Assembly (NCBI GenBank): GCA_904063045.1 | Contig: CAJFCJ010000019.1 | Span: forward strand, 2,185,700 to 2,249,699 | Direction: 5' to 3' | DNA length: 64,000 nucleotides | Source: Dimorphilus gyrociliatus | Lineage: Eukaryota > Animalia > Annelida | Shown: piece after piece, positions 3,847 to 52,635 of the stretch | How the letters are laid out: every line of letters begins with the position of its first letter | Numbering within the stretch: position 1 is the stretch's first letter | Program-made: the position numbers and the translations under genes | Notes under the pieces: model-generated | Database searches by the model: none | Told to the model about the DNA's origin: nothing | What the model saw: only the letters and a program-made list of their open reading frames with translations

Positions 3847-4342
3847 TAGTTCAGTTGTATATTATATGAATAGTCAAAACTCAAAAATATGTGTTTGAGA
3901 TTCTTAGTTGAACTGTTTAAATAAAGTTTCTTGCTTTGTAATCTTTGACTTCGTTCATTAGTTTAAGTTTACTAATAGTGCAATTCACCTTTATCATTCA
4001 CTAACTCATTCAGCTTACGTAAAAGATTGCTGAATATATTGAAGAGAGACGCTAGAAAATAGTACTCATAGCAAATATAACATACGCTCTGAACTTATGT
4101 TAGAGCTAGTACGAAATTTTCTCTTCTCGCTTCGATTTTCGGAATATCTGGACATTAAACATCTTATTTGAAATTGTAAATTAATCAATTCATAAAAAAT
4201 TATTAAAATTCATAAAATTTAAATAAATTGTTCTGCTTAATTTTTTATATTGGTTTTTTGAAAGCGTAACGTTGAACTTAAAGATGGCGGAAAGTGACTG
4301 CTAATTTTTTGGAATCATTTGTTATAGGAAGGAGAATACACC

Positions 4343-5737
4343 ATGCTTTCGAAAGGAAATTGTGGTGGGGACGTGGGTCATCTTAGACCTCAAGATAATT
4401 TATCAACAATGAAAACTCCTTTAGTTAAAAGATTAAGATTAGAACCTTTTTTCGACTGGAATAATCTACCACCTGAGATCTTAGTAAAAATTTTTCGTCA
4501 TTGCGTAATGACAGAAGGCCATTTATCTCTGGCAAGATTGGGAGCGGTCTCTGAAAATTGGAGAAAAATTATTCCAACACCGTCTCTTTGGAATTCTGTT
4601 GATTTCGTAAAAGGTTCCGAAAATTTTACTTCAAAGGATTTAGAGTCAGTTACCAGGAGATTATGTCGTTACATACACAATTGTAAAAAGATATCCTTTA
4701 ATTCTACCTTGTCCAATATCAGATTTGATAGTTTGTTGCCTTTTTTAAAAAATGTAACAGAGATATCTTTTAAAGGTTGTCCTAAGTTAAAACCAAAAGT
4801 TTTAGTCACTTTGGCCCAGTCAGACAACGCAAACACCTTGGATTCAATAAACATTGACGGAACATTCTCGTATCGTGTTTACAACAGACATATTACTACA
4901 TTTGTTTCAAACGTTCTACCTAGATTAAGAAAACTGAATTTTGCGAATAATAGATTCGACGGTCCAGCTTTACATATGCTTATTGAAGGACTTACTGATT
5001 TTTGTCCAATATTAGAAGAATTGAGTTTGGAGAATTGCTTTTGCACGAGCGACTTTGATCTGATTCCGAGATTAGAGTATTTAAGAATGAAGAGAAAATG
5101 TCTTGCGTTAAAGAGTTTAAACTTGAACCATACAAACGTAATGTTTTACCATTATACTTCCAGCGAGAGAAATGCAGAACTTGAGCAGACGACTAACATG
5201 TTTGATTTGAAAGAATTTCGAATGGCAAATTCCAATATGCTGCAATATTTCGAAACGGCAGATGCACTCACCGAATTTATTGGAGATATGCCGAACTTGG
5301 AAATATTAGAATTAAGCCGTTTGAAGGGAAATAACAGCTTCAAAGTACTTTATTATTACAAAAGTAATAAAATGAAATATTTATATTTAAGAGAATCTTT
5401 ATCTGGTCATCTAATAAATGAAAGAGAGTTGAGTGAACAGGCTGCAAAAATATTTCGTAGGTGGTCATCGACTCTTATCGAATTAGATCTCTCTGGAAAT
5501 AACTTGTATGATTTTAGTTGGGCAGTAATTTTCAAGAGTTTCGGAAAATATTCTCCGCTAACTAAGCTTAATTTAGCTAAGACAAATGTCGTGTCAGCTG
5601 GAGTCGAATTTATATTGAGAAGATTTAAAAATCTTAGATATCTCAATTTGAAACTGTGTAATCATCTTAAGGAACATATGAAACGAGAATATCACAGTAT
5701 AGACCTAAGAGAGGCTAGGAAGAACTTAAGACGGTAG
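4343..5737 (+). CDS. FBXL6: F-box/LRR protein, FBXL6-like (intronless)
   Basis: F-box WNNLPPEILVKIFRHCV...LARLGAVSENWRKII..PSLWNSVDF, followed by LRR-like LxxLxL repeats (LRKLNFANN, LEELSLENC, LKSLNLNHT, LIELDLSGN, LTKLNLAKT). Orthologue assignment is from recalled similarity. Confidence 0.75.
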   Translation: MLSKGNCGGDVGHLRPQDNLSTMKTPLVKRLRLEPFFDWNNLPPEILVKIFRHCVMTEGHLSLARLGAVSENWRKIIPTPSLWNSVDFVKGSENFTSKDLESVTRRLCRYIHNCKKISFNSTLSNIRFDSLLPFLKNVTEISFKGCPKLKPKVLVTLAQSDNANTLDSINIDGTFSYRVYNRHITTFVSNVLPRLRKLNFANNRFDGPALHMLIEGLTDFCPILEELSLENCFCTSDFDLIPRLEYLRMKRKCLALKSLNLNHTNVMFYHYTSSERNAELEQTTNMFDLKEFRMANSNMLQYFETADALTEFIGDMPNLEILELSRLKGNNSFKVLYYYKSNKMKYLYLRESLSGHLINERELSEQAAKIFRRWSSTLIELDLSGNNLYDFSWAVIFKSFGKYSPLTKLNLAKTNVVSAGVEFILRRFKNLRYLNLKLCNHLKEHMKREYHSIDLREARKNLRR

Positions 5738-10046: not shown

Positions 10047-10830
10047 ATGAGTTTTCGTGGACGAGGAGGTCGCGGTGGAGGTGGAAGAGGAGGTAAGTTA
10101 TAATATTAAAAGATATAGCATAAGAATTGCATGAATTTTTTTATTCTAGGTGGCTTTAGGGGACGAGGTGGCGGAGGCTTCCGAGGCAGAGGAGGTGGTG
10201 GCGGAGGTGGTTACAACGAAGGACCTCCTTCAGAAGTTGTTGAAATCGGAAAGTTTTCCCATGTATGTGAGGACGATTTAGTCTGCAAGTGTTCGGTTGA
10301 AGAAAAAGTACCTTTCTTTAACGCAGGAATTTTCTTGGAAAACAAGCAGCAGGTTGGAAAGGTTGATGAAATCTTTGGACAAATAAAGAATTATGTATCC
10401 TTTCAAAGTCTTTAACTAGTTTTAGAAATCTAATTGTTTTGACAATTGACCCTTAACAAAACTTTATTAGTATTTCTCAGTAAAGCTTACTGGTGATGTC
10501 AAAGCTTCTTCCTTCTCAGAGAATTCAAAGGTTGGTTCTTTAAACAAATACATTCTGTGTCATATGTTTATTTTCATATGTTAATGTCAGTTCTTCATCG
10601 ATCCTTATAAACTACTGCCACTTGGTCGATTTCTCCCAGGAGCACAATCAGGTAGAGGTGGAGGCGGAGGCAGAGGCGGCGGTAGAGGAGGTCGTGGTGG
10701 CCGAGGCGGAGGTCGAGGAGGAGGCCGGGGCGGAGGCGGTGGTTTTAGAGGTCGTGGCGGAGGCAGAGGCGGACGTGGTGGAGGAGGAGGTTTCAGAGGT
10801 CGTGGAGGAGGAGGTTTCCGAGGACGATAA
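10047..10830 (+). CDS. GAR1: H/ACA RNP subunit GAR1, 196 aa, 4 exons
   Basis: Exons 10047-10092, 10150-10394, 10471-10530, 10591-10830. RGG-rich termini flank the core [10 protein letters not shown]...[24 protein letters not shown]...[10 protein letters not shown]. Confidence 0.97.
10395..10470 (+). other. U12-type (minor spliceosome) GT-AG intron in GAR1
   Basis: 5' splice site GTATCCTTT, branch-like CCCTTAAC at 10450-10457, AG at 10469-10470. Removal restores the GAR1 sequence NY|YFSVKL. Confidence 0.85.
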
Positions 10831-22043: not shown

Positions 22044-25000
22044 ATCCATCTAACATTTTGTATCATCTTATTTTCTAGATTAACAACGTCAGCAGCTGTA
22101 ATTTTTACGCTCGATAGGAAACGTTTTGCTCCGCCATTATTCACCATCCTGAATTGAAATTTCCTATGCCGTAAAAGCTGTCATCAACTAATGACTCTAG
22201 TTGAAATTTGTTTCTCCTATCTGATACGACTCCTAGATTAAATCATGCGATCCATATAAACTACAATTTTACAGATCGTTGAAGTCTGCAACTTTTGACC
22301 TATTAAAAAAAATACAAAAGAAAGAAGGGAAAAAATAAGAGATATATGCAACACTTTATATAAATTTTTCACTCCCTTTCTCTAGAACAAGTCATGTGAT
22401 CATTCTTTGAGAATGACTCTAATAAAAAAGGAAAGTATAGGTTATAGTTTACGAATAAGAAGATGAATTTGTTTGTTTGTATATTTTTAAGTACGGAAGG
22501 ATATTGAAAAAGGACGACATAAAGAGTGAAAGAGAGAGAGAGAGAGAGTATCATTTAAATTATTCTATTGCAAGCTATGACAAACTTTTGTTTATAATGT
22601 TTCTTATTTCTTTCTCTTTCATCGAAAATAAGATTACTATTCATGTTCTTTAACATAATTACCCCAAGAACAAGATATACGCATCCCGTGTGAAGATATA
22701 GGAGGAAGATAAGTACAAAATGGATAATAATGGCAGTAGAAAACCATAAATATTGTTTTCTCTTATAAATTGGCTATCGTCATCATTATATAACGATTAC
22801 GAAGAACAGATGCCAACTTGTAAAAAAAAAAAAGAAAAAGTATGTTCATAGAAAAAAAAACAAACTCTATTTGATAGTAGGAGAAAACAATGGCGTTTTG
22901 GGAATTATATAGAATAAAACTGTTACTTAGTAATACATTTTGTCTTTTAATGAATTATTTATAATCCCTTTAGTAAATTTTCCTGTTTAGTTGCACTTGA
23001 TAGATTCCTCAAACTACTTAATAGTTTTATTTAGATTCTAATTCTACAAAGCATTTAATTAACTATGTCAAAAGAGAATTGCTTTACCAATATACACACG
23101 AAAAATAGTAAGATGTATGCTATACAAGTCCGGAAACTATTAAATAACTTGCATTTTTCTTTTAACTTCTTATTCAATATATTTAAAATGATATAAATGT
23201 TGTTTACACAATTTGTTTTCTTTTTAAAAGTCATATATAGAATCAATTTAAAGATATATTTAAAGAAGTTAAAAAGTTCGATAACCCCACTTTTTGAGTA
23301 AATTTAGAGTGCTATCATATCTAGGAAAGGGTGAATGAGTGAGAGAGAGAGAGAGAGAGAGTAAGTTAAAGCAGTATTTATCATACTAATTAACATATTG
23401 CGTAACTAAATAAAAATAAATAAAGAGTGGCATGACAATACTATAAAAAAAAGGTGGAGAAGGACTATTTCAAGTATCCTTCATTGGTCGGTGTCAATTT
23501 TTAGTTTAATGTTGTATTTTTACCAGTAACAATGATACTCGATTGTTAGAGACAATAATAGGTAAATTTACAATGGTATAGAGGAAATTTAAATAGCCTG
23601 CCTTATTTTTCATACTACGGATCGGGAGGGGTCACCGTCTTTGAATACTTTATTTTTTTATTTTCATTAGAAATGAACAAAGATGGAGACGAAGAAGATA
23701 AAGAAAAGCATATTTCTCTCTCAATTGATATGAACAATAAAATAGTCATTTTCTTACTATTTATATATATATCCTATAATATCTATTTGTTTAAAAAATC
23801 TTGTAATATAAAGACAAATATTTCGCATATTCCTTAAATATTTAAACTATTATATATAACTACACTTGTTTACCGAACAGTACGTTTAAAAATGTCTAAA
23901 AGTATTAATAATTAAAGGAATAAAATGGAGGAAAAAGATACAAGTTTAGTGGTTTGGCATAATTCTTTAAAATACAATAATATACACTATATGCACAAGC
24001 TTTATCGTTTTACTTTATTAACTCTAAAAGACTGAAGCGCCATCTGTGTGCTAATTTAAGTATTTTTTGCTTAGAAAAGAAAACAAAAGAATTACAATAC
24101 TAAAAAAACGAAGCGAAAGATATATATACAGATAGATAGATTGAAGGAATGAACGAATAAAATGGAAAGATTTGACTTCTTAATGTAACTTGAGATATTC
24201 ATAACATATGATTAGAAAAGGCTAACTCGATAGGGGGTTAACAAAGAAAGAGTCAATACTGAAATTGATAGTCTTAATAATCCCTTCTTTTTTTTTCATA
24301 AAACTGAAAAGAATAAAGTAAAAAAAAAAAGTAATTTTCTTATTGATTACTTTTTTGCATAGACCTAATTAGGAAAAAAAAATTACATGTTATGTATAGA
24401 TTTTTATATTAATATAGTATCTATATATATACATATATATATATATATACTGTATATACTGTAATATAGTGTATTCTGTGCTGTATATATACAGTTTATA
24501 CAGCGGAAGAGATTGTTGCTGATCTTTTATTTTTTTTCCCATTTCCAACTCCAAACAATGGACGATAATATGTTAATTAAAAGTTATAATTTGTTCTCTT
24601 TTGAATAATAACAATCATTCTATCGGTAGTGTTTTAAGCATCCATATTCATGCTTGAGCGATGAGTCATCGTAATATAGCTCGTCGTTCAATACTGAATA
24701 GAGTGAGCGAGTGAGTGAGCTGGGAGAGAGAGAGAGAGAGAGCGAAAGAGAAAAATAGAGGAGAGTGTTAGACTTGACTAGCTGCAGCTGTTATAAGTGA
24801 TTTTCGTGGAACGTTCAGGTATACGTTTACCTTTTTAATTAGATAGCGCGCTGAATCGTCGGCTTATCTTATCTGTGTATTATTATTATTAATATTTACA
24901 CACATATATATATATTTATTATATGTATGTAGAGCGAATGTTCTATCGTCTTATCGCTCGTCTTGCGCATGGCTTCAACGGATTGTTCGTTATTCTATCG

Positions 25001-25052
25001 ATGTAGAAATAAATTTATTTTTTGGGTGGAATAACGACGACGACTCTTCGCT

Positions 25053-28000
25053 ATGTTGGACGTTGGCATATATCTTGGAATGTTTGGGCTTCTAGTAGCC
25101 TACCTAAAGATAGCATACGAGGCAGAAGTGTTGCGTAAAAGGTGCCACCTCCTTGAAGAAGATATCGAAGATGAACGATCCAAAGATAAACCGTTGCCAA
25201 ACAATGAAACCCAACAAGTCTCTTCGAATGAGAAAGAAGATGAAAAGATAATTGATTCTGCAGAGAAAATAGATAATAATAATGGACAGGTTGACGCCAA
25301 AAGTGAAGACAATCCGCAAGATGTATTAAAAAAAGATGATGAAGGGATATTTGACGAGGAACAACGCGAAGAATACTCATATGATGAAGAAGATAGTAGT
25401 ACTAACAGTGTTTACGAAGATTTAAACTCTGATGAAGAAGTACCTTCTACCAATTCTTCAAGATCAAAACAAATTATAAGAAATATAGGAAGAACTATTG
25501 CAGAAGAAAAGGAAGAAGAAATGCACAATAATAGCTCATCTTCAGATGAATTCGAATACGAACCTATGCTCTCCGATATTACCGAAGTTAGCGAACCGGA
25601 GAGCGAGGTTGAAATTATCAATTCAATGCTAAAGGACGAGAAAAGTTTAGCATATCTTGTAAAAACAAGATCCTTATCTGAACCTGTAGACGTCTATCGC
25701 TGGTCCGACTCTGATTTGAGTGATGAAGATAGCTCAACACCAGAACGGCAGTGTTTACAATTACCTCACGTTTTAACTTCTCCAACAGATGAAATAGAAG
25801 AGTTTGAATTTAATGATTCAGTGCATCAAAAGATATCAAACGACTCTTTAAATGATACGATTACACCGTCAAAACCAATAAACAATCAGTCATCAGAATC
25901 AAAATTAGAGGATAAAACTATTATTTCGTCTATTAAGTACGAAACCATTAACGACAATATTCCATCTCTATCTTCTGTAAAAGAATCTGCAAAGTCCTCT
26001 AACGTTGATCAATTGCAAATAAAAGAAGAAGTTGACGAAGAAAAAATTGTTCCCTCTATGAAAGAGGTTCGTAATGTGCTGCGTTCAATTCTTTTAAAAC
26101 AAACAAAGCCAACTTCATATTTGACTGAAACTCCTGTAAAAAATAAAATAGTAAGATTTGAACATGCGGATCCGAACGAATTTGAAAACGACGATTGTAC
26201 AATTAGCGAAGACGATTGGTCTAATTCATCTGTTTCTTCATTTGATAGGCTAAAATTAAAGGTTTTAGATTCTCATGATGCCCCAATAGCAACTATTGAT
26301 TCGGATTTAGATTTTGATGACGATAACGATGAAAATGAATCGCCTCTTATTAATTCTCCAAGGTCGGTCGACGAGGAGATTTTCTCTCAGAAAGTTACCA
26401 CAAAAGGCCAACTCATAGATGAAGATTTTACGCTCAAACCAAATTTAGATTCGGACACAAAAATAAATGAAGTTGTTTATAACAATGTATCTCAGCTTGA
26501 ATTGGCTAACCATAATTTGGAAGAAAGGCCTGTTTCTTCATGCGATATAGCTTTAGAGAAAAGTTCTGTTGATGATAGGAAAGTTGAAATAACAGAAACT
26601 AAGGTTATAGATAGCGATGATAAAATTGTATCGCGTTCCTCCTCAGAGGAATTTGTGCACGAATTCGAAGAGGAGGTTCGTTTCGAGTACACTATTATTT
26701 CCACCAGAAACGGGGAGAATATAGATAGTAAAGAACCAGAGAAGTTATCTGAAAGAGAAGAAACTTCTAATATTTTATCATCAGATTTCGCAATAGAAAC
26801 TTTCAATTGGGAAGACGACGAACCATTTAAGAGGAGAGATTTACGTTCAAAATTGACAACGAGTACTCCTTCAGACGACACTATTCAAGAGGAACAACAA
26901 AACATTGATAAAGTCCATGAGAGAAAGGAGGAACATGTGATCGATTCTCCCAGAGATGTGAAGGAGATTAAAATAAAAGAAACTGCCATATGCGAAAAAG
27001 AGGACAATAGAAATGAAATTGACATAGACCAGCGGTTAGAGATGTCTGATAATATGAATGAGGTAAAAACAAACAAGATGGAAAAGATAGCTCTTCCGAT
27101 AATTAAATCCAAACCTCTTTATGGACCTATTCAAACAATTGTACCCTCATCGTTCTATAATGAAAACATACTAAGTGCAAAAGTTGAGCCTGCAGAAGAG
27201 AATCTACCGAATCACCTCGAGAATAACCTGAAAGGTGAACTTAGAACGAAGCCCCAGGAAGAATCAATATTGTTGCATACCAGTACTTTATCTGGCACGA
27301 ATATTGATGGAGAGAGCGAGAATGAGAATAATAGCTCTATTAATACATCGACTTCGTCGACTGGACTGGAGAGTAGTAAATCGAAGGAGAAATTTTTAGA
27401 AACAAATATAGATGAGATTTTAATGGATCCAATAGAAACTAATATAGATTCTGACTTGGATGAAAAATTTACTAGAAACAATTTATCAAATTATCTCAAA
27501 CCCGATTTAACAAATGCTGGCAATTATAGCAGATCTTGTACAAATAGTCTCTCAAGGAGTTCTTTGGGTAAAGAAGAAATGACAAATAATTTTAGTTTTG
27601 ATTCAAAAACTAATTCTTCTTTCACCGAACCACTAGAGACGGATATAGATGCTGTTTTAGAGATGGATAATGTCGTAAGTGTATCCCGAACGCCTAACTT
27701 ATCATTCAGAAATAGTTTAATAACTAAATCCGAAAGTGAAGAGGACGAAAGTTTTATTCGTCGAACAAAACTTATAGCGCTGGGGCCCAGTAGCGTGGGT
27801 AAAACACGTTTATTGAATGCTCTACGATCTACTACAATAGATTTTGATACGCCTACAATTGGTATAGAAGTTAGGCGTCAGTATTTGGATGAAATAAATG
27901 AGTTATGGACTTATGATTTTGGAGGCAATGAAGCGTTTCAATTTGTTCAACAAATGTTTCTCACCGAATATTCTGTTTGCTTGCTAGTGGTCGACATATC

Positions 28001-29972
28001 GAAGTCACCAGCTAGCTTACCTTTTAGAGTACCAGAATTTTGGTTTGAAACAATTTGCCATCGATTAAGAAATACCGTTGTCATAGTCGCAGCAACTCAT
28101 ACTGATCTATGTAGCTCAGATACTGTTCAAACTAGGGTTAATCTAATAAAAGATAGATTAACAACAATAGAACGAACGTTTACCGAACACTTAGAATTCA
28201 TAAAGAGAACCCTATTGGCTGATAGTGCTCATGACAAAGTTAATAGGCTTCATTTAGAGAGAATTAACAATATCTTAACTAGGGGCCCCGTTTTGAGCGA
28301 AATTATACCCCTGAGTTTAAAAACGTTCGACGGTATCGACACTTTGAAAAGACACTTGGTAAACACTCTAAAAAAGATTCGACCCCTTGCTAAACCGTCT
28401 CATTTTGAAGATTGGCTATTAAACAGTCCGATTCCTTGGATAAATAGAGAAGATTTATATAGGCAGGCAGCCAGATTTCATATAAAAAAATTGGATTTGG
28501 ACAAAATTCTCGAAAATATGCGCCAAGCTGGTGCCATCTTGAATTATGTTGATGAATCTTCAAATTTCATATTTACTAATCCGAATCTTTTATTAACTGT
28601 CTTCTCTTTGAGTAGTTTATCCTCTACTATTCTAACTGAGAAACAATTAAGGGATATATGGAGGGAGTATCACGGTATACGTGATGACAATGTATGGTCT
28701 GAAATTTTGCATTTACTTCAAAAATTCGACCTCTGTTATGAACTGATCTCAAAGACTGAAAGAGAATTTTGCTTCCCTTCTTTACACTCAGATTTCCCTC
28801 CTAATTCTTCTTTAGTTATTTGGCCAATTGTACTAGGAGATCCCGACTGGGTAGAATATTCTATGCTGTTGGAATTTCCGTCTACACAGGCACCGCCTAG
28901 TGGACTAATAGAAAGAATTAACGTTCGTTTACAATATTTTCTTGATCATAGAATTGATTGGAGAAACGGCTTTGTTGCTTTTGCGAATTCAGGAAAGGAT
29001 ATCAGTAAAGTTTGTTCGTATACTCGAAGGCATCAATGTAGATCTGCTATAAGATTCGCGGTAAGGTTGCGCAAGGATCGTCGACAGATGGCACATCACT
29101 TATTCCAAGTGTACGCAGCTACAGCTGATAAACTAATCGAATCATTCTATCCAGGAGTCATCTACATATGGCTAATGGAGTGCTCCCACTGTCTGAACAA
29201 AACACGAGATAGACCAGTCATTCCAACGGCATTTAAAACCGATAGACATTTAACAGCTAAAAGTGACATAGTGGAATGTTCGGGTATGCTAATTCCCAGT
29301 TCAGCCGCCTTTCCTCCTGAATTTAATGGTCCCAAATACGGTTTTTTAAATGAGAACGCTCGAAGCGCTTTAATATCATATCATTCAAATTTAATACGTT
29401 CAATTTCATCTTTGAACTTGATGAATTATCTACTTAAGAATGCTGCAATTACTGTAAAAGAAGCCGATGATATTTTAAAACAGAACGAGGAATCAGACCG
29501 TAACGAGTTACTCTTATCACATATATTTCAAAGGGGGGAGCCGCTATTTAGCTACCTCGTAGATCAGCTACGTCAGAACAAGAGAACCGAAAATTTAGCA
29601 AAATCTATAGAGTGTCATATCAATGATTTGGAATCACGAAGTAAACAATTATTACAACTTAAACAATTGGATCAAGGTAGAAATTATTCACTGCCAAGAT
29701 GCAAAAGTAACAACTACGAACAAGCTTTTTCGAATAGATCCCTTGGTCTTTCTCACTATATTCATATCATTCCAGATTCTGTACCTAACGGAGATAATTA
29801 TATCATAATGGCTGGGGAAAAATACAGGGAAAACTACAGGGATAGTTTCATATGTGCACCTCATAATGAGAAGAGAAGGAGGCGAACCCAAAGTGCTCCT
29901 TCTAATGGTTCAGCTAGAAATCGTTTGTTGTTGAATTTTCATAAAACTGACAGTGAAACATTTGATTGTTGA
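25053..29972 (+). CDS. Intronless Roco-family GTPase: N-terminal TM anchor, about 870-aa acidic low-complexity region, MFHAS1-like Roc-COR, C-terminal CARD-like death fold
   Basis: P-loop GPSSVGKT (27783-27806), TIGIEV, YDFGG and ATHTDLC, plus a CSHC and ...AFPP tail recalling MFHAS1. Six-helix CARD-like segment LISYHSNLIRSI...LLSHIFQRGEPLFSYLVDQL at about 29352-29610. Confidence 0.8.
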   Translation: MLDVGIYLGMFGLLVAYLKIAYEAEVLRKRCHLLEEDIEDERSKDKPLPNNETQQVSSNEKEDEKIIDSAEKIDNNNGQVDAKSEDNPQDVLKKDDEGIFDEEQREEYSYDEEDSSTNSVYEDLNSDEEVPSTNSSRSKQIIRNIGRTIAEEKEEEMHNNSSSSDEFEYEPMLSDITEVSEPESEVEIINSMLKDEKSLAYLVKTRSLSEPVDVYRWSDSDLSDEDSSTPERQCLQLPHVLTSPTDEIEEFEFNDSVHQKISNDSLNDTITPSKPINNQSSESKLEDKTIISSIKYETINDNIPSLSSVKESAKSSNVDQLQIKEEVDEEKIVPSMKEVRNVLRSILLKQTKPTSYLTETPVKNKIVRFEHADPNEFENDDCTISEDDWSNSSVSSFDRLKLKVLDSHDAPIATIDSDLDFDDDNDENESPLINSPRSVDEEIFSQKVTTKGQLIDEDFTLKPNLDSDTKINEVVYNNVSQLELANHNLEERPVSSCDIALEKSSVDDRKVEITETKVIDSDDKIVSRSSSEEFVHEFEEEVRFEYTIISTRNGENIDSKEPEKLSEREETSNILSSDFAIETFNWEDDEPFKRRDLRSKLTTSTPSDDTIQEEQQNIDKVHERKEEHVIDSPRDVKEIKIKETAICEKEDNRNEIDIDQRLEMSDNMNEVKTNKMEKIALPIIKSKPLYGPIQTIVPSSFYNENILSAKVEPAEENLPNHLENNLKGELRTKPQEESILLHTSTLSGTNIDGESENENNSSINTSTSSTGLESSKSKEKFLETNIDEILMDPIETNIDSDLDEKFTRNNLSNYLKPDLTNAGNYSRSCTNSLSRSSLGKEEMTNNFSFDSKTNSSFTEPLETDIDAVLEMDNVVSVSRTPNLSFRNSLITKSESEEDESFIRRTKLIALGPSSVGKTRLLNALRSTTIDFDTPTIGIEVRRQYLDEINELWTYDFGGNEAFQFVQQMFLTEYSVCLLVVDISKSPASLPFRVPEFWFETICHRLRNTVVIVAATHTDLCSSDTVQTRVNLIKDRLTTIERTFTEHLEFIKRTLLADSAHDKVNRLHLERINNILTRGPVLSEIIPLSLKTFDGIDTLKRHLVNTLKKIRPLAKPSHFEDWLLNSPIPWINREDLYRQAARFHIKKLDLDKILENMRQAGAILNYVDESSNFIFTNPNLLLTVFSLSSLSSTILTEKQLRDIWREYHGIRDDNVWSEILHLLQKFDLCYELISKTEREFCFPSLHSDFPPNSSLVIWPIVLGDPDWVEYSMLLEFPSTQAPPSGLIERINVRLQYFLDHRIDWRNGFVAFANSGKDISKVCSYTRRHQCRSAIRFAVRLRKDRRQMAHHLFQVYAATADKLIESFYPGVIYIWLMECSHCLNKTRDRPVIPTAFKTDRHLTAKSDIVECSGMLIPSSAAFPPEFNGPKYGFLNENARSALISYHSNLIRSISSLNLMNYLLKNAAITVKEADDILKQNEESDRNELLLSHIFQRGEPLFSYLVDQLRQNKRTENLAKSIECHINDLESRSKQLLQLKQLDQGRNYSLPRCKSNNYEQAFSNRSLGLSHYIHIIPDSVPNGDNYIIMAGEKYRENYRDSFICAPHNEKRRRRTQSAPSNGSARNRLLLNFHKTDSETFDC

Positions 29973-30364
29973 TTTATAATTGTTAAGGTTTTTGCCTTAA
30001 AATTTTACTTTTATTTTTAACAAATGAATAATGGTAATAAAATTTTATTTTACTTAATAAAAATTCTATATTCACATCAATTAACACCCAAAAAAAACTC
30101 TTTATTGTTTTTCTTATAGTGTTTATGTTTTTTTTCTACATCTTCAAAGAGAAAATAACTTTTTAGAAAGGCACGGAAAACGATGTTTATACTAAATTGA
30201 ACAGTGACATCTAGTAGCGATCTATAAACCAGTTTTCCAATTATCGGTTTGTCGTTTATGAGCGATAATAAATGTTAGCGTGAAATTTGATATAACAAGA
30301 ACATAAATCTTGCAAAAAAAGGAGTATTATAGCATATATATTTTTTTATTATTAGCAATATACC

Positions 30365-36090: not shown

Positions 36091-37146
36091 TTATAGCTTC
36101 AATTCACCGGGCATTTCGGTCCCTTTTAAGCCCGAAAGAAGATTTTCGGCAGCGAGTAACGCCATCTGCGTCCTAGTTTCAATAGTTGCACTCCCAATAT
36201 GCGGTAAAACAATGCAATTATTCAGTTGTAATAATTCGCTATCAGTAGGCAAGGGTTCAGGTGTAGTGACATCTAAACCAGCAGCTCTAATCTTTCCCGA
36301 TCGTAGGGCGTCTATTAAATCGTTCTGCTCGACAACCTCGCCTCGAGAAGTATTTATCAGAATACTGTTTTTTTTCATTTGATTAAAAGCGTTATTGTTG
36401 AAAATTCCAGTCGAATCAGCTGTCAGAGAACAAGTGACCAACAAGAAATCGCTCTTTTCCAAGAGTTCACTGAATTCCACATATCTTGACCCAAGTTCAT
36501 TGTCAATTTCTGGTTTTGAACCGCTTGCTGTGCTATAAATAATCTCTTTAACCCCAAAAGGTTTTAGTCTACGAGCTGTTGCGATACCAATTCTTCCAAA
36601 ACCGTAAATTCCCACAGTTGAGCCTTTTAAAGAAGTTCCGCACATCCACAGCGGACTCCAAGTTCCCCATTTCCCGTCTTTAACAGCGGCAACAGCTTCT
36701 GTTATTCGCCTACAAACGGTTAACAACAAGGTTACCGTTAAATCAGCAGTAGTTTCTGTTAGAACATCGGGTGTATAGCCAACACGAATATTTTGTTCTT
36801 TACATGTTTGCAAATCGATATGATTGAAACCCACTGACATGGTACTAATAACTTTCAAGTTCGGTCCAGCGGCCCCGATTACTTCCTTATCAATCTTATC
36901 TGTTAACAGGCAATACAGACCATGTATTCCCTTGACGTTTTGTAATAATTCGTTTCGGGGTACTGTTGATTCCGCCTCTTTCCATTGAGCGATAATACAT
37001 TCATCTTTTAATTTTTCTAATGCTTCAGACGGAATCTGCCTAGTTATATATATTTTAGATTTACCATCGATTGACATATTTCTTCGTAGTCTAATTGTGT
37101 TTAATATTGAGTTGTGTCGTCGAAGAAAACTTGAAAAACTTGTCAT
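36091..37146 (-). CDS. GRHPR: Glyoxylate/hydroxypyruvate reductase (intronless); second in-frame ATG at 37077
   Basis: KIYITRQIP, GPNLKVISTMSVGFNHIDL, VGYTPDVLTETTADL, GIYGFGRIG, INTSRGEVV, GLDVTTPEPLP, LPHIGSAT. Confidence 0.95.
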   Translation of the reverse strand: MTSFSSFLRRHNSILNTIRLRRNMSIDGKSKIYITRQIPSEALEKLKDECIIAQWKEAESTVPRNELLQNVKGIHGLYCLLTDKIDKEVIGAAGPNLKVISTMSVGFNHIDLQTCKEQNIRVGYTPDVLTETTADLTVTLLLTVCRRITEAVAAVKDGKWGTWSPLWMCGTSLKGSTVGIYGFGRIGIATARRLKPFGVKEIIYSTASGSKPEIDNELGSRYVEFSELLEKSDFLLVTCSLTADSTGIFNNNAFNQMKKNSILINTSRGEVVEQNDLIDALRSGKIRAAGLDVTTPEPLPTDSELLQLNNCIVLPHIGSATIETRTQMALLAAENLLSGLKGTEMPGELKL

Positions 37147-44357: not shown

Positions 44358-47300
44358 ATGGGCAATGCTCCGTCGACTAGAGACGAAAAGTTGACTTATG
44401 ATCTTACTTCCAAAGAGGTGAGTGATAACAGTTGAGCTGCGCTAAAAATAAGGGCGATTATTGAACAACTGAGCGACAATAGGCTATTTTTTCGAAAGAG
44501 AAACAGAAAACAGCTTCATTTTGTTAGCAGAGTGCGTATTTTCCAAGATAAATTGTAATTTTTTTTAGGTGAGAGATGCAGAAGAAAAAGAAAAAGATAG
44601 TTATAAGACTTTGGCCTGTATACTCTCGTCATCGGAGCTTCGGGAAGCAGCCGCAAGTTTAGATGAGGATCTGACGATGGACCGGAAAAATGTTTTAATG
44701 GCTCATCAAAATTCGTTGAATCGACGCCTCTCTGAAGTAGCTGCTCACAGTGAAATGACCATTCCAATCAGCAATTTGGTTGATATCGTTCAAAGAGACT
44801 GTTCAAATCAGGCCGAAGCATACGCAGTTTTGTCTTGTTTGGACACCGAAGGAGATGGGATAGCAGATGTCGAAACTGCTAAGGATATTGTTAAAAATCT
44901 TGATTCTACTGCACAAGATACAGCGTTGGCCAACAGTGTACGAACTCTCCAATCCTGCATACATGTACCGGGCTTCGTTGATATTTATACTGGAGAGGAA
45001 GATAGAAGGAATGCCCTCGTTCATAGCCAAAAATTAGTTACTTACTTGTTAAAACATCGAGCTTGTTCATCTAGTTTTCCACTTTTGCCACTAAGAGCTT
45101 TTTCATCAACACATTCCATGAGGAAAGCTGTTATTAAAGCTTATAGTAAAGATTTGACAAAGCCTAAACTTTCATCTTCAGAATTCTCAATGTTTACTGA
45201 TAAACCATTTCAACGTATTATAGTATCGTCAAACGAGAAGGACGCTCATTTTCTGCTGGACAATAATAATGGTACATATTGGCAATCAGAAGGGGTAACA
45301 GGAACTCATTTTATTCGATTGATAATGTTGCCGCAAGTGAATTTGTCCAAGTTATTTTTGAACGTCTCTACTTACGATAGTACTTACATGCCCAATTTGG
45401 TTGTTGTTAGTGCCGGGCCAGGACCTGAATCTTTAAAAGAAATATCACGATCTAATATACCATCAAACTTTAAAGGTGACTTTCTACTCTTAGACTATTC
45501 TGAAGGATATTTTCCAATTGTACAAATCAATATTAGGCGAACTCAGTCTGATGGTAATAACACTAGAGTTCGAGGAATTAGAGTCGAAGGAATTCAGTAC
45601 AAAAAGGACTCTTCAACCCCAACAGCATTCGAGGCTTCTCAAATTCTTCTTGCAGAGTTCCTCTTTACAACTGCTAAACTTATGTCTGATCTTGTACCAA
45701 ATGCTTTAGAAACTTATGTTGGTCATTGTACAGCAGCATTGTCCAACATGCCTCCATTATCTTTATCAGGATCATACTCATCTAGTTCCCATGTTTTCGA
45801 TAAAATTCATCAGCAAGTATCTGAAATAGCAAAGAAAAATCGACAAGTGGCCCTCCTACTCTTTTCATACAATTTAGCAAGAGGTCATTTGGCAGGAATA
45901 TTTCAATCCTTAATTTATCTCTCAAATCTGAGTTCATCTGGAGATAATAATGACAGTCAACTACCTCATCTCGTGAAGTCAATGAGAGCAGTTCTTAGAG
46001 ACGAATTAAGACAACAATCAGATTGGCTTGATGTTCAATTAATAGAGACGGATGGGGTAGAGACATCCAGCTCTGATTATCTCTTCTCGTCTAATTGGAC
46101 TTCTCAAACGATATCTTATACAAGTCAACCCAGTAACAACTGTGTAACATTTGTTTTGAAGGCAACTGCTAAAACTGATGAAAATATTCTGCTGACAAAA
46201 TTTCGTATTCGGTTCGCCAAAGGTGGTAGAGCATCTAAGCGAGTATTGATATACTTAAAAAACGGCGATGATTCAGCCAGTCTTTCAAATCTCGATTCTA
46301 TGAGTATAGAGGAAATTGATCAACTTATTGAAAATCAGCAACTAGCTCCTAAGCCTGATTTGTATTTAAAAGTCTTGAATGAATGGGATGAAGTTGAATA
46401 CGTCTTAACTGATTGCCCCCAAGGCGATTCAGTAGTTATTAAACTTTTTGGATTAAAAGATCCAGAAAAAGAGAGTATTGGTATAATATCTATGCACTTG
46501 TTTGGTTTACTTATGAAGAAACCGAGATTATCACCCATATTAGATAAATATTCAAATAATTGTTCTAATATAGCCCAAATAACAGAATCTCTTCTAATTT
46601 TCGTTTTCTGCCTTGTTCAAAAACGGAAATGTAGAAAACTGTCAGCCAGGGATTTAACAGTGACAAACGTCTATGATTTCTACAGCCTTATCCCAATTGA
46701 TCAACAATTATTGCTTCTTGAGATATTCTATCTTTTCCTATCCGAATTAGAAGGTTCCAAAGACGATGAAGGAGCAAAGAAACTTTGTCAACACTTATTT
46801 TCAATTGTCAATAATGAAGATGAGGACCGATCTAAAAATCCTAAATTCCTTTCTCTTTCCGAAATGATTTTAGTTGAAGGAGCTAACGTCTTTTTCCCAG
46901 ATACGAGCACGCGTACAAAACAATTAGTTGATATGCTTAACGCTGCTATAGAGCAACACGAAACTAGTCAAGTAAAAAATTCTGTTGGTTTGAGCTTTCG
47001 TTCGCTGTGCTCCTATTTTATAAGAAATGAGCCATGGATACTTTTACAGGTTACTTTTTTTAAAGGAAACAAATATGAAGTTCTTACTTTTTTCTTTGTT
47101 ATAGGACGAGGACGAATCGGACAATTCTGTTCTATATACTCTTTTTCAAGTAGCGGGAAGAGATGTTGAAAATGTGCTCAATGGAAAGCAAGCATCGCCT
47201 CATTCCGATGGAGTTATATCACTTTTGTCGACATTATTGGCTTACATTATTTTTAGTAAGCATAAACAATATAAAAAATACGTGCTCCTTATATCCGAAT

Positions 47301-50300
47301 TGGTTGGAAAAACGTTAAAGAGGCTTCAAGAATTCGATTTAGAAACGTTTGAAGACCTTATTCAGCGCCTAGATGGTTTAATAATATCAGTTACCTTTAG
47401 GCAATTTGTAAGTATAAGCTCCTTTTTTATCGTGTAGAAAAATACATACAGATTTTAATGTAACCACCATTAAACTAGATTTATTGCCTCTTGGAAGCTA
47501 CAACTAAGTTTATTAACAATGCCGAACGCAGGTGGCTTTTGGAAACGCTCCAACCAAATTTATTTCTATTATTTAATATATACGAAAAGTTTGGCCCACA
47601 TCTTACTAGTAAAATTAAACGTGAAGAGAAGGAAACTATCTTAAAAACGTGGCGTGTTGAGTCAGAGCACGAATATAGAGCAAACGAACGTATTCGTAAA
47701 ACATTCTTCTGCCCAAATACTATGCTATTTACTGTTGAATTTGATCCGCAATGTGAAACGGAAGCGAGATATGACTTTTTAGAATTTTTCACATACGAAA
47801 ATTCATTACATGGTGGTCATAAAATTAAATGCCATGGTAAAGTTGGTTCAGAAAACTGGCATAATTTCATTACATTTTACAACTCTGAAAGACTCTACTT
47901 TACGTTCAATTCGGATGGATCTCAAGAGCTATGGGGTTACAAATTTAAGGTAACTGCTCGAGGTATACCAGAGCCCGAGCCGTCATGGCCAATTGATAGT
48001 TGTTTAGCTTATGCCAAATTATGTGGAACTTTATGTAGTCAGCTTATATCAGATGTGACTACTTATAATTATATTGGATGTGAAGATGCTATTGTCGGAG
48101 ATATGCTAAAGAGTGATTTATGGAGTGGACTCCTTAGAGCTGGATTTATCAATAAAGATAGCGACGAGACTTTAACTTCCACTTCGCGATCTTCTTATAA
48201 CCATTCCGTATGTGTCGATGACGCTGATATACTACTCTTTAAAAGTTTCATCGAATCAGATCGGCCCAATGAATTAGTTGAAAAGTGTAAAGAATCGAAC
48301 AAAACGCAGAATATTGGAACGGAAGAAATTGAGATGGCTGTTAGATGGACATTTTATGCTATATTATATCATTCGTATGAGTTAAGAGGGGATATAAGAA
48401 AGTTTCTTGAAACTGGTAGGGTAAATGAGCCTTTGTTAAGTATTTATGCTGCTGCCAATGGCCTACGTATACACTTGATTGAAGAAAGACAAAGAAGACG
48501 AAGTAATGTCGAGCCAGAAGAATCAAAGAAAACTTCCAATTCGGACGTTGAAAAAGATGAGGAAGAGTATGCTACCCAATGCTTGGAAAAGGCCAAATTT
48601 TTGTTGGAAATAGCTGCTTTAAAAAAGACTACTCCTTCCACTGGTGGTCAATTAAAACGTCCAAATATACATAGGGTTCATCGATTAAATTCAACAGGTA
48701 GTTTAGCCACTCGCCGTCACATGAGAGTTGACGCCTCGGCTCTTGACAAATATCCAGCATGTAAAGCAGTCTTGGAATTTGTAAGAAATCCAAATTGGAG
48801 TATTCAGATAGTCAAGAAATTAATTAAGGATAGAGAAAGACTTTCACGCGAATTAGCGTTTGTTTACGACTTTGTAAGTGAGTCGATAATGATTATGAAA
48901 TTCTCGGAGCTACCATCTTTAGCGTTTCTTACAACATTCTCCCAAACGCAATCTGATTGGAATGATCACTATGCTAGCGGTTTAGATGGTTGCGGTCTTG
49001 AAAGTGAATCCAACGTTAAACGCGCCTATTATAATTTGATAAAAAGAGCTGTTAAATATGTAGCTTCTAGAGATAGAAGTAGGATGGAAGGAGACGACAT
49101 CGGCTTACAGAAATTAGATCATTTTACTGCAATTACTCTTCATTTATTAGATGTACAATGGAGATCTAACGATATGCAAGTCTTGGTAGAAATGGATCTA
49201 CCTAATTTCTATGCCAACTTGGCGAAGAGAAGTGTCTCTTTAATGAAATTAGAAACTGACTATGATGGTGAAAAATCGAAAATAGTTGACTACGAGAAAC
49301 ATATAAAATGGTATAAAGAAGTTGAATTGACAAATAAATTTCACGAATGGTATGAGGAACACGAATTAAAAAAGACAAGAGAATTGCAAATGTTCGTTGC
49401 TCGTTTTTGCGATATTCTCGAAGTGGATATCTCTTGTGATGGTTGTAATATGACTATACCCGGAAAGCGCTATCGTTGTTTAGATTGTGCAGATATGGAT
49501 TTATGCGCTACATGCTTTTCTGGCGGAGTGCAACCAAGCTCTGATACTAATCATAAACCTGGGGAGCATCGAATGGTACCGCTATCCTATAAATGCGACG
49601 AGTGTCGGGCATTTATTGTTGGCATACGAGTTCATTGTAATGAATGCGACGATTTCGATTTATGTGACGGTTGCTTTGCAAATAACCTATATCCAGCCGG
49701 ACATGACGCAGCACATGATGTAACAAAGCATCCTTTGGTTATACTTCGTCAACCAGATTCTCCTATTTGGTCATTGGCAAGTTATATTCATCAGCATGCT
49801 TGGTTAAGTTTGTCAAGTCTTTCTTTAACTGCCTCCCATTACTCGTCAATGAATAATGAATCTGCTTCAACGATCTATGCACAATGTATAGCTTTAACTC
49901 AAAAAACTTTGTCAGCATTGGAGCCAGGTAGAGATTTAGATGAAGAAGCCGATGTTCCTCTAGAAGTCAGACAAGAATATGCATTAGGAGCACACGCAAA
50001 TGAACGTTTGATGGGCTTGTTATGTGCCATGCTTCAGCCAGCGTCTGCTCAGCCGAACGAATTAATAACAAAGAATGTTCTCACTCTACTTATCAAACTT
50101 GTTCATATTGTTGACGTTCTTGTGGTTGATGGTAGTCCGAATTATCTAGCTCTTGCATTACTTGTTCGTCTTCTTAGGCAAACGCCTCCAATATTAGCTG
50201 ATGAAGCGACAATTGCTGCAACGAATACGAGCGTTCGCGAAAATGTTTATCCAGGAATAGCTACTATTCAAGTTTTTTTTGATTTTGGTGTTGAAAGATT

Positions 50301-52635
50301 AAAATCTGCTGATTTAGAATGGACTCAGGCAGTTGTGATAGCATTACAAAGAATTGCTAAAATGACATTTTGGAGGGATGTTGTTGGTGATGCTGCTCAT
50401 CATTTAATGACTAGTGTAGATTCTGAGGCTAATGTTGATAAAATAGTGTTTGCCCTTTTAGTTCTGGGAGGTTTTCCACTTTTACCGTCAATCGGTGTTG
50501 CAACAAATTTCGGTGATGGGAGAAGGGGTATTGTTCTAAAATATTTTCCAGAGAAAAAGATATCTCTTGTGGTCGATCTGCTAAGTAGACGAAGAGTGAA
50601 AGTTGAAGACGACAAATTAAAAATAGCCGATACTCAGCCGTATGCTGATGTTGGGCATTTAAAATTTTGTTGCGACCTGGTATTGAAAGTAAAGAATTAC
50701 GACAAGCCGAGTCACGACACAATCTTTAAAGCCGCTTTAGCCCTTAGAACTTTAAACAATGCTGCTATAAACTCAGATTTACAGATGAGTAGTGAAAACT
50801 TATTGAAGACACTGGTTTTCCTAGCCTCAACTAGAACTAAATTATGCAGCAATTGGCTTCCGCAGCATCTTGACATTGTTGCCCTTAACGTTTATGCTTT
50901 AAAAAAGAAAGGCTGCCTGCAGGTTGTTGACGAACCTAAATCTTCAAAGACAACAAGTAAAGAGGCTGTTCCTGAAAAACAAGCAGTCACTAGTTTTATA
51001 GAGGGTTTACCCGAAGAGGCAAAGAAATTGATAAAAAAGATTAGACCAACACTTGACGTTGACTGGCTAAGGGAAGTGCGCAGTGCTTTGACTGATCCTC
51101 AGTTGTTTCTCGATATGCTTCGGGAGACGGTTGAAGCTCAAAAAGATCATGCCAGGTCTCCATGTTCGTCTGAATCTTCCTCCAGTTCATCTCGCTATCG
51201 CTCTTATTCATCTGATTCGTCAGATGACAGTTTTTGCGATCTTATGGTCACATCATGTAAAATCGAAAATAACGACGCCGACGATGATGACGACGACGAC
51301 GACGACGATGACGACGACGATGATGATGACGATGACGACGACGATGACGACGACGATAATGATTATGACGATGAAGATGTAGCATATGAAAGAAAAGCTT
51401 TTATCATATCCAGCGATGGAATTTTGGCATCAAATAATACGCCAAAAGGTGAAACTGTTGTAGACGATTCACAATCGGTCATAGCAAAGGATGATACTGC
51501 TGATGATGACAGAGACGAAGTTCTTGTAACTCCTGCCGATAAAAATAGCGAAAGTGATGCTACTAAGTACCGAAAATCTTATAAAGCTATGCAAAAGAAG
51601 CTAAATCAATTGAAAAAGAATCAGACGGATGTTGGCGAAATATGTCGGGCTATGTGTGTACTTCACGCTCGGCGTCTACTTTGTACCTTATTAACAGATT
51701 GGCAAGGGGCGTCGATACCTGCTTCCATTTTGGGTTGTGGAAAGCCTGAGAGGGTACCATCTGTACTCGACGTCTTAAACACAAATGAGAGAACCTTTCA
51801 ACAGGTGGTTGAAAGTGTCCTATCTCACGTTGATTCAAGTGTATTAGGGACATTATCAAGAGCGGCCTGCAATCTGGTCCGATCAAGTATTTTTAAAGTG
51901 AGAGAAAGTCGCCATAACTATAATAGAGTTACTGAAGATGTTCAAGAAGTTAAAATAGTGGGCGTTCATGCTCTAAATATATCATTCGACAAGGAATCCT
52001 GTCTTGAGAGCGGAGATACTCTTATTTTGTCAACTTCCAGAGATCTTACAGAAAATAGAAAAGAAATAACGACCGATTGGAGTTCAAGGATACAATTCAC
52101 AAATGACACATTCTACTATAGGTTAGAATGTACAAGTGTTTCAAGCAACACGATAGCAACAAAATGGGGCTATAAAATGAATATAACAGCGGAGAAACCA
52201 ACTAATTTCGATACAGGTTTCAAATTATTAACCCAATTACTAAATGCTCATGCTCAGTATTTACCCTTGAATGAATTGTGGGTAATTCTTGTGCGGGAAA
52301 CCTGTAAACAAACAGGTAGAGAGAGAAGGAAGATTATTCAACTTTTGTTAGCTTTACTTAATTCTGCCAAAGTTATTGAGAAGAAAGTTGATATACTTAT
52401 TTTAGCGCCTATTTGGCGCGCATACTGCAAGATAAAAACAAAGGATGAAACGAAACCAGCCTCACCTCTGTGCAGAGCTCTAACAGAATTTTTTACAATT
52501 GTCGAAGAAACTGCCATTTTTTGGAAACTCCAGGCTTCCTACAGAGCTTCTCTTGGAGATACCGATCAGATTGTAGCTCTATTCAAGCAGGGTATCCTAC
52601 TAGTAAAAGCTATAAAAAAACAAATTGAGGCCTAA
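44358..52635 (+). CDS. ZZEF1: Zinc finger ZZ-type and EF-hand domain-containing protein 1, about 2666 aa, 4 exons
   Basis: Exons 44358-44417, 44569-47049, 47105-47407, 47479-52635. MGNAPS N-terminus, APC10/DOC domain (TYWQSEG..HFIRL), CUB-like segments, and two ZZ fingers (CDGC...YRCLDCADMDLCATCF; CDEC...HCNECDDFDLCDGCF). Confidence 0.93.
51280..51357 (+). repeat. Coding (GAY)n repeat, 26 consecutive Asp in ZZEF1
   Basis: Mixed GAC/GAT codons, counted directly. Confidence 0.95.

Follow-up and report, generated by a model that had tools for sequence, protein, structure and literature searches.

To our knowledge, work on Roco GTPases has been almost wholly concerned with LRRK2 and DAPK1, and the invertebrate relatives with a death fold carry automatic names and have seen no bench work. 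In DAPK1, in proteins built of leucine-rich repeats (LRRs), Roc, COR and a Death domain, and in the Aplysia proteins of the type NHR-Roc-COR-Death-TIR, Roco-Death-TIR proteins which have been described in silico (PMC9334734), the Roc-COR unit is followed by a death fold and a Ser-rich tail. A template consisting of LRRs, an AP-GTPase with COR and a variable C-terminal effector has been discussed for bacteria and for DAPK (PMC8195603). The gene treated here comes from the annelid Dimorphilus gyrociliatus and lies at 25053-29972 on the forward strand of a stretch of 64,000 nucleotides (contig CAJFCJ010000019.1, positions 2,185,700 to 2,249,699), which as a whole will be called the window and whose numbering is used throughout; all features of the gene are on the forward strand. 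It encodes a protein of 1639 amino acid residues, hereafter the window protein, with the same order of Roc-COR, death fold and Ser-rich tail, but the death fold is a CARD where DAPK1 and the Roco-Death relatives carry a Death domain, and there is no kinase, ankyrin, NHR or TIR part.

With human MFHAS1, LRRK1 and LRRK2 the window protein has the Roc-COR fold and the G motifs in common; it is without LRRs, kinase and WD40 repeats, and it has the CARD which these three proteins lack. Orthology to MFHAS1 was rejected on architecture because the N-terminal LRRs before Roc were not found, and orthology to DAPK1 because there is no kinase, ankyrin or Death match and the death fold is a CARD. Roc, COR-A, COR-B and CARD are colinear with those of proteins from Lingula (XP_013417012.1, XP_023933626.1, XP_013382554.1) and Branchiostoma (XP_019643705.1), which also share with the window protein a near-invariant Cys/His motif at the end of COR-B. 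Unlike the window protein they carry LRRs in their N-terminal part and stop directly behind the CARD, whereas the window protein adds an N-terminal helix, 870 residues of acidic disorder and, behind the CARD, a helix and a tail of ~95 residues. Their identity to the window protein is ~20% and they belong to a different clade of the tree. A likeness in mechanism, by analogy, may be seen to Apaf-1, CED-4, NOD1 and MAVS, which offer a CARD for homotypic assembly by means of a nucleotide switch or a membrane tether, and the window CARD is nearest to that of Apaf-1. However, the nucleoside triphosphatase (NTPase) of Apaf-1, CED-4 and NOD1 is a STAND ATPase, and the window protein is an unrelated Roc-COR GTPase with the CARD near the C-terminus and with an anchor that, if real, is N-terminal; it is a member neither of these families nor of the MAVS family.

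We propose that the gene codes for a lineage-restricted invertebrate Roco protein ("AP-GTPase") with a death fold after COR, in which the LRR sensor has been replaced by a helix and an acidic tether and in which the GTPase switch would control the CARD; we put the probability of this reading at about 0.55. Compared to the known core, what is new is that the LRRs are missing, that there is an anchor-like helix at the N-terminus and that the disordered region has been placed N-terminally. As the coding sequence lies in a single exon, the gene offers a clonable and compact case for how a Roc-COR switch controls a CARD. An orthologue of 1691 residues, P0001, was recovered from two Logan runs (loci L001 and L002) and is 57% identical to the window protein overall and 79% identical over Roc-COR-CARD.

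The Roc-COR core and the CARD

The Roc domain (residues ~902-1109, 27756-28379) is matched by Pfam Roc over residues 906-1018 (E 4.3e-13) and by LRRK2 Roc chains at E 4e-8, and it is modelled with a predicted local distance difference test score (pLDDT) mostly above 85. Its GTPase motifs are intact, with G1 as GPSSVGKT (911-918), G3 as DFGG (955-958) and G4 as THTD (1015-1018). COR-A (residues ~1117-1250, 28401-28802) gives a Pfam match over residues 1125-1244 which at 34.5 bits is just below the cut-off of 35.3, and its fold aligns with LRRK1, LRRK2 and the Roco protein of C. tepidum. COR-B (residues ~1266-1420, 28848-29312) was placed by the alignments A1 and A2, the model and Foldseek. Near its end the residues C1377, H1379, C1380 and C1409 (29181-29279) make up a C..H.C...C motif that is near-invariant across 48 Roc-COR proteins and may be a metal site. 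The AlphaFold2 model of residues 880-1639, made with a 48-sequence alignment, has a pLDDT of 78.5 and a predicted template modelling score of 0.71; confidence is high in Roc, COR-A, COR-B and CARD and very low in the last 95 residues. In a Foldseek search ~570-630 columns of this model were aligned with the Roc-COR of LRRK1, LRRK2 and the C. tepidum Roco protein (E 2e-21 to 2e-14). Judged by domain matches and predicted fold the protein is a Roco protein, having a Roc domain and, directly adjoining it, COR-A and COR-B. Intact GTPase motifs and a COR had been noted in a preliminary description of this DNA, made by a model from the letters and their open reading frames (ORFs), and Pfam, the G motifs and Foldseek agree with it.

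The CARD occupies residues 1434-1508 (29352-29576) and has six helices of which the first is broken. Pfam finds it over residues 1440-1511 with 24.7 bits against a cut-off of 23.9, with 28.0 bits when the C-terminal piece is searched alone, and with 25.9 bits in the orthologue. A profile made from the C-terminal part of the family has the CARD of Apaf-1 as its first match (E 5.6e-12), followed by those of NOD1, RIPK2, CARD8, CED-3, RAIDD and caspase-9. A separate model of residues 1425-1545 (pLDDT 89.5) consists of six helices, with helix 1 split (10-18, 20-26), and a long helix after them; all 50 of the PDB matches listed by Foldseek are CARDs or CARD-based designs, the best being the Apaf-1 CARD with a target-normalised TM-score of 0.82-0.90 and a root mean square deviation of 1.5-2.5 Å. 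A Death domain in place of the CARD was considered and rejected, since there is no Pfam Death match and both profile and fold are those of a CARD. On these profile and model grounds the death fold is a CARD. The helical bundle suspected earlier at 29352-29610 coincides with the modelled six-helix bundle, and the reservation made at that time, that this segment might be no death fold, can be dropped.

Behind the CARD both models have a single long helix (residues 1513-1543, 29589-29681) which the Lingula and Branchiostoma proteins do not have. It is followed by a conserved tail (29682-29969), predicted to be disordered (pLDDT <40), with two RxxSxP sites (1543-1548 and 1611-1616) and a C-terminal Cys; its identity to the orthologue is 60-77%. 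The C-terminal Cys (29964-29969) is kept in the orthologue, the two proteins having the endings ..FDC and ..FHC, and it is not part of a CaaX box.

Gene structure, the missing LRRs and selection

The frame of 1639 codons plus stop is the only long ORF at the locus. The DNA of the window is AT-rich (GC ~33%), and from this composition stop codons are expected at ~7% per codon, so that 1639 open codons are not a matter of chance; the orthologue and the ratio of nonsynonymous to synonymous substitution rates (dN/dS) likewise rule out a chance ORF. A public run which contains 91% of the sampled words from the window stretch yielded a contig of 5521 nucleotides, X2, that is colinear with 24461-24818 and then with 24933-30089, window position 24818 being joined to 24933 at contig positions 364/365. 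This gives a gene with an exon 1 of non-coding 5' leader (24455-24818, where the start is a minimum set by the beginning of the contig), a sole intron of 114 nucleotides within the leader (24819-24932, GT-AG, 25% GC) and an exon 2 (24933-30089) which carries the remainder of the leader, the entire coding sequence and the 3' untranslated region. The intron borders, CAG/GTATAC at the donor and TATGTAG/AG at the acceptor, are both kept in L001. The contig ends directly before a genomic run of eight A, 28 nucleotides past an AATAAA poly(A) signal (30056-30061), and its depth is unlike that of the neighbouring contigs. The simplest reading is that the contig is the cDNA of a two-exon mRNA with a lone intron in the 5' leader. 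Five contigs of 163-293 nucleotides from a coral metatranscriptome, ~98% identical and distributed over the acidic region, Roc and COR (25204-28956), are compatible with expression in a close strain without proving it. The gene is real and, to judge from the spliced contig, expressed. As to the origin of the ~98% matches, a close strain probably inhabits the coral sample or the aquarium.

The preliminary description had allowed for a gene whose N-terminus is spliced to upstream exons coding for LRRs, and this is not the case. In exon 2 there is an in-frame TAA seven codons upstream of the ATG at 25053; the ORF can therefore not be extended upstream and no upstream LRR exons are joined to it. 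The 3.9 kb upstream of the gene contain no noteworthy ORF. LRRs were found neither in the protein by Pfam, nor at the window and orthologue loci by tblastn with LRR-bearing relatives, nor in six-frame pieces of the same loci by a home-made LRR profile, which is insensitive, as it also missed an F-box/LRR gene at 4343-5737. Because of this insensitivity it is the transcript evidence that carries the weight for the absence of LRRs, and upstream LRR exons are ruled out by the spliced contig, the in-frame stop and the lack of LRR matches taken together.

The exact product of 1639 residues does not occur in a collection of 15 billion proteins, which does contain, from NCBI and UniRef, the protein of the adjacent GRHPR gene (36094-37146, reverse strand); any public gene model at this place must therefore differ from the ORF. 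This, together with the several upstream ATGs in the 5' leader, could be taken to mean that the gene model is an artefact, with an internal start near Roc, a non-coding acidic part or further coding exons. We find such an artefact very improbable: in two species no stop interrupts the frame along 4.9 kb of AT-rich DNA, a dN/dS of ~0.25 and conserved islands are seen in the acidic part, constraint is strongest in the first 51 codons, and one contig runs from the leader across the ORF to the poly(A) site.

Against P0001 the overall dN/dS is ~0.15; since synonymous sites are saturated (pS ~0.7), this and the following ratios are approximate. Ranked from the lowest to the highest ratio, the parts are residues 1-51 (0.013), Roc-COR (0.057), the CARD (0.08), the tail (0.12) and the disordered region (0.25), which shows that purifying selection acts throughout the protein. 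The most constrained part is the N-terminal helix plus the next 30 residues.

The 5' leader also has features of its own. An upstream ORF of 21 codons (24969-25034), in frame with the main ORF and with its stop 18 nucleotides ahead of the main ATG, has a counterpart of equal length in the orthologue, where 15 of the 21 residues and the whole of the last octapeptide are identical; it is a candidate for translational control. Conservation of the leader (24455-25052; ~4080-4839 in L001) is far above that of synonymous coding sites, and a block at ~24630-24712 which is ~97% identical in L001 contains a TGAGTCA site and a short inverted repeat, AAGCAT..ATGCTT. A search of Rfam with the conserved leader gave chance-level matches only and no known RNA element.

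The N-terminal helix and the acidic region

The most hydrophobic window of 19 residues in the protein is formed by residues 4-22 (25062-25118), which by hydropathy and conservation are a candidate signal-anchor. Their Kyte-Doolittle mean is 1.68, where the classical threshold is 1.6, and on the Hessa scale they sum to +2.75 kcal/mol, which is marginal. The helix contains a GxxxG motif, is preceded by D3 and has an RKR cluster on its C-terminal side, and residues 1-51 are near-identical in the orthologue. With a negative flank before the helix and RKR after it, the positive-inside rule would have the bulk of the protein in the cytosol. A membrane anchor is a plausible function of this segment. 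In the preliminary description the protein was said to be membrane-anchored by an N-terminal hydrophobic helix; the helix is there and is highly conserved, and the anchoring itself can be stated less firmly, as the hydrophobicity is marginal.

The marginal values on both scales and the Lys inside the 19-residue window would also suit a soluble protein, in which the helix serves oligomerization, lies as an amphipathic helix on a membrane surface or packs within the molecule, and in which the acidic region is regulatory or autoinhibitory. It fits with such a protein that the closest relatives, L003 and L005 (see below), are without a comparable N-terminal helix and have their disorder after the CARD. 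However, no other stretch of the protein is as hydrophobic or as conserved as the helix, it has the GxxxG motif and its charge flanks resemble those of a signal-anchor, and we hold the soluble alternative to be possible but the less probable of the two.

Residues 26-895 (25128-27737) form an acidic, Ser/Thr-rich region with 23% Asp plus Glu, 20% Ser plus Thr and a net charge of -104, and by charge and hydropathy they are predicted to be disordered. The earlier characterization as ~870 residues of acidic Ser/Glu/Asp-rich sequence thus agrees with both composition and charge-hydropathy. Within the region there are conserved islands at residues 114-134, 162-178, 204-220, 358-403, 410-425, 677-703 and 859-873.

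Just before Roc there are three ET(D/N)ID motifs, at residues 783, 795 and 862 (27399-27671). Searched as [ED][TA][DN][IL]D, the pattern has three copies in residues 783-866, against 0.05 expected from shuffles, and all three are kept in P0001; the disordered tail of the L003/L005 relative has four copies (L003 ~10070-10760) against 0.01 expected. The occurrence of ET(D/N)ID in two distant lineages, in disordered regions which are differently placed, suggests a common conserved partner. Interpretations as caspase site, LC3-interacting region, TRAF-binding motif, SUMO-interacting motif or dileucine motif were tried, and none of them fits every copy; the motif could be assigned to no known class. 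Three RxxSxP sites, of the 14-3-3 mode-1 type, lie at residues 206-211, 1543-1548 and 1611-1616, with positions conserved in the orthologue; as possible 14-3-3-type sites they may recall the regulation of LRRK2. The best-conserved island contains, at residues 365-369, KIVRF, which is RVxF-like (the type docking protein phosphatase 1), and the L003 tail contains RSVTF, the pattern being a degenerate one. As functional docking or phosphorylation sites these short motifs are leads only.

Relatives, mechanism and neighbouring genes

An exhaustive search with residues 880-1639 over 1.84 billion representatives gave 719 matches, only four of them with E <1e-30, namely the orthologue and three short unnamed proteins. 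Among the weaker matches, those which align through COR-B into the CARD are proteins of ~920-1070 residues with the Pfam order LRR-Roc-COR-A-COR-B-CARD. Their sources are Lingula anatina, with many paralogues, and Branchiostoma belcheri, and they appear in RefSeq as "malignant fibrous histiocytoma-amplified sequence 1 homolog"; others among the weaker matches are LRR-Roc-COR-Death proteins. In a tree of Roc-COR sequences the window protein and its orthologue fall within a clade of 11 rows (Shimodaira-Hasegawa-like approximate likelihood ratio test 99). The nine other members are single-exon Roc-COR ORFs on eukaryotic contigs, and the next branch is an LRR-Roc-COR-Death protein.

The closest non-orthologous relatives are L003 and L005 from the ENA assembly ERZ25767047, with 29-33% identity and 209 bits. 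Here the Roc-COR ORF is followed by an intron-like, low-GC gap of ~1 kb and then by an ORF on the same strand whose first domain is a CARD (E 4.8e-9), with 29% identity and E 5e-9 in comparison with that of the window protein, and whose remainder is ~1380 residues of Pro/Ser/Gln-rich disorder. We infer that the two ORFs are one gene. Like the window protein this relative is without LRRs, has the CARD after COR and has long disorder with ET(D/N)ID and an RVxF-like site; unlike it, the disorder is C-terminal to the CARD and Pro/Ser/Gln-rich, and no N-terminal hydrophobic helix was seen. The genes at L003 (5800-13534) and L005 (8001-14741) are near-identical and lie on separate large contigs, and they could be haplotypes or a recent duplicate. 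On the opposite strand at L005 1-4071 there is a Ty3/gypsy-type retroelement with protease, reverse transcriptase, RNase H and integrase. A weaker case of the same layout, Roc-COR and then CARD plus disorder, is L004 (GCA_022702875.1), where the ORF after Roc-COR (2645-4882) contains a partial CARD-like segment (residues 402-462) preceded by a long insertion of GVSQP-like repeats. At L008 there are Death-domain exons downstream of Roc-COR. No LRRs were found by tblastn and the insensitive LRR profile at the loci L003, L004, L005 and L008.

By these domain assignments the combination of Roc-COR with a death-fold domain behind it is widespread among invertebrates. As far as sequence comparison goes, LRR-less Roc-COR-CARD proteins with long disorder form a sub-clade within this theme, of which the window gene is the only detected member with an N-terminal disordered region and a predicted hydrophobic helix. 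In the literature searched, the wording "Roc-COR-CARD" or similar does not occur. The preliminary description called this a Roco architecture which it did not recognise, and it asked if the architecture was already annotated across taxa. It proves to be a variant rather than a class of its own: the Roc-COR-CARD core is already present in the databases from Lingula anatina and Branchiostoma belcheri, annotated with its LRRs as "MFHAS1 homolog", and the nearest relatives are LRR-less Roc-COR-CARD genes with long disorder.

If the proposed reading is right, the protein could work as follows, with a putative role in cell death or immunity. The N-terminal helix would act as a reverse signal-anchor, with the N-terminus outside and the remainder in the cytosol, and so hold the protein at an internal membrane. 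As a flexible and regulated spacer the disordered region would carry docking or phosphorylation motifs, the candidates being ET(D/N)ID, RxxSxP and KIVRF. Like other Roco proteins, the protein would change its dimer or conformational state with the nucleotide state of Roc-COR, and this change would decide if the CARD is available for homotypic contact with a CARD caspase or a CARD adaptor. A passage in one account (PMC11052575) has Roco proteins cycling between dimer and monomer with the nucleotide state, and the "GTP-switched dimerisation platform" of the preliminary description should therefore be read loosely.

Several points weigh against this proposal. The hydrophobic segment is short, with 14 uncharged residues before K18, and is marginal on both scales. 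The motif patterns are degenerate and were partly chosen post hoc, the ET(D/N)ID pattern among them, so that its P values are optimistic, and taken by itself the number of RxxSxP sites reaches only P ~0.03. The run behind the X2 contig has no recorded library type and may be the sample of the window assembly itself. Finally, some Roco proteins, for example LRRK2, work in membrane traffic and not in cell death. The protein might accordingly be a brake or decoy, which holds a CARD partner at the membrane or caps CARD assemblies in the manner of CARD-only proteins, or its CARD might be a generic interaction module in a protein for LRRK2-like membrane traffic. For these alternatives one can mention that Pfam finds one CARD and no effector domain with enzymatic activity, and, for traffic, that LRRK-type Roco proteins act on membranes according to PDB titles. 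Against these alternatives, the layout of an NTPase and a terminal CARD mirrors that of the activating platforms Apaf-1, CED-4 and NOD1, which are also the best CARD matches, and we regard this group of explanations as rather unlikely.

Apaf-1 has been reported missing in annelids, molluscs and Lingula, and CRADD was proposed as activator of their CARD caspases (PMC11463336), and for this reason an NTPase-CARD protein from such animals deserves testing. Beyond the proposed switch-controlled CARD one may speculate, at long odds, that Roc-COR-CARD proteins like this one are nucleotide-switched activators of CARD caspases in animals without Apaf-1. They would then be a GTPase-based analogue of the apoptosome, which in the present case would be attached to a membrane and modulated by phosphorylation and 14-3-3-type binding of the disordered region. 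Since the LRR-Roc-COR-CARD form is found in Branchiostoma as well, the architecture does not simply stand in for Apaf-1. The gene may nevertheless bear on the question of which platform activates CARD caspases in spiralians without Apaf-1.

The rest of the window holds compact animal genes, for GRHPR, F-box/LRR, GT92, WD40 and ZZ/APC10 proteins. Judged by the GRHPR gene, the DNA is that of a bilaterian animal, with no narrower placement. At 44569-52635 on the forward strand there are two long ORFs with APC10/DOC and ZZ domains; taken together they look like a ZZEF1-like gene whose exons are very large.

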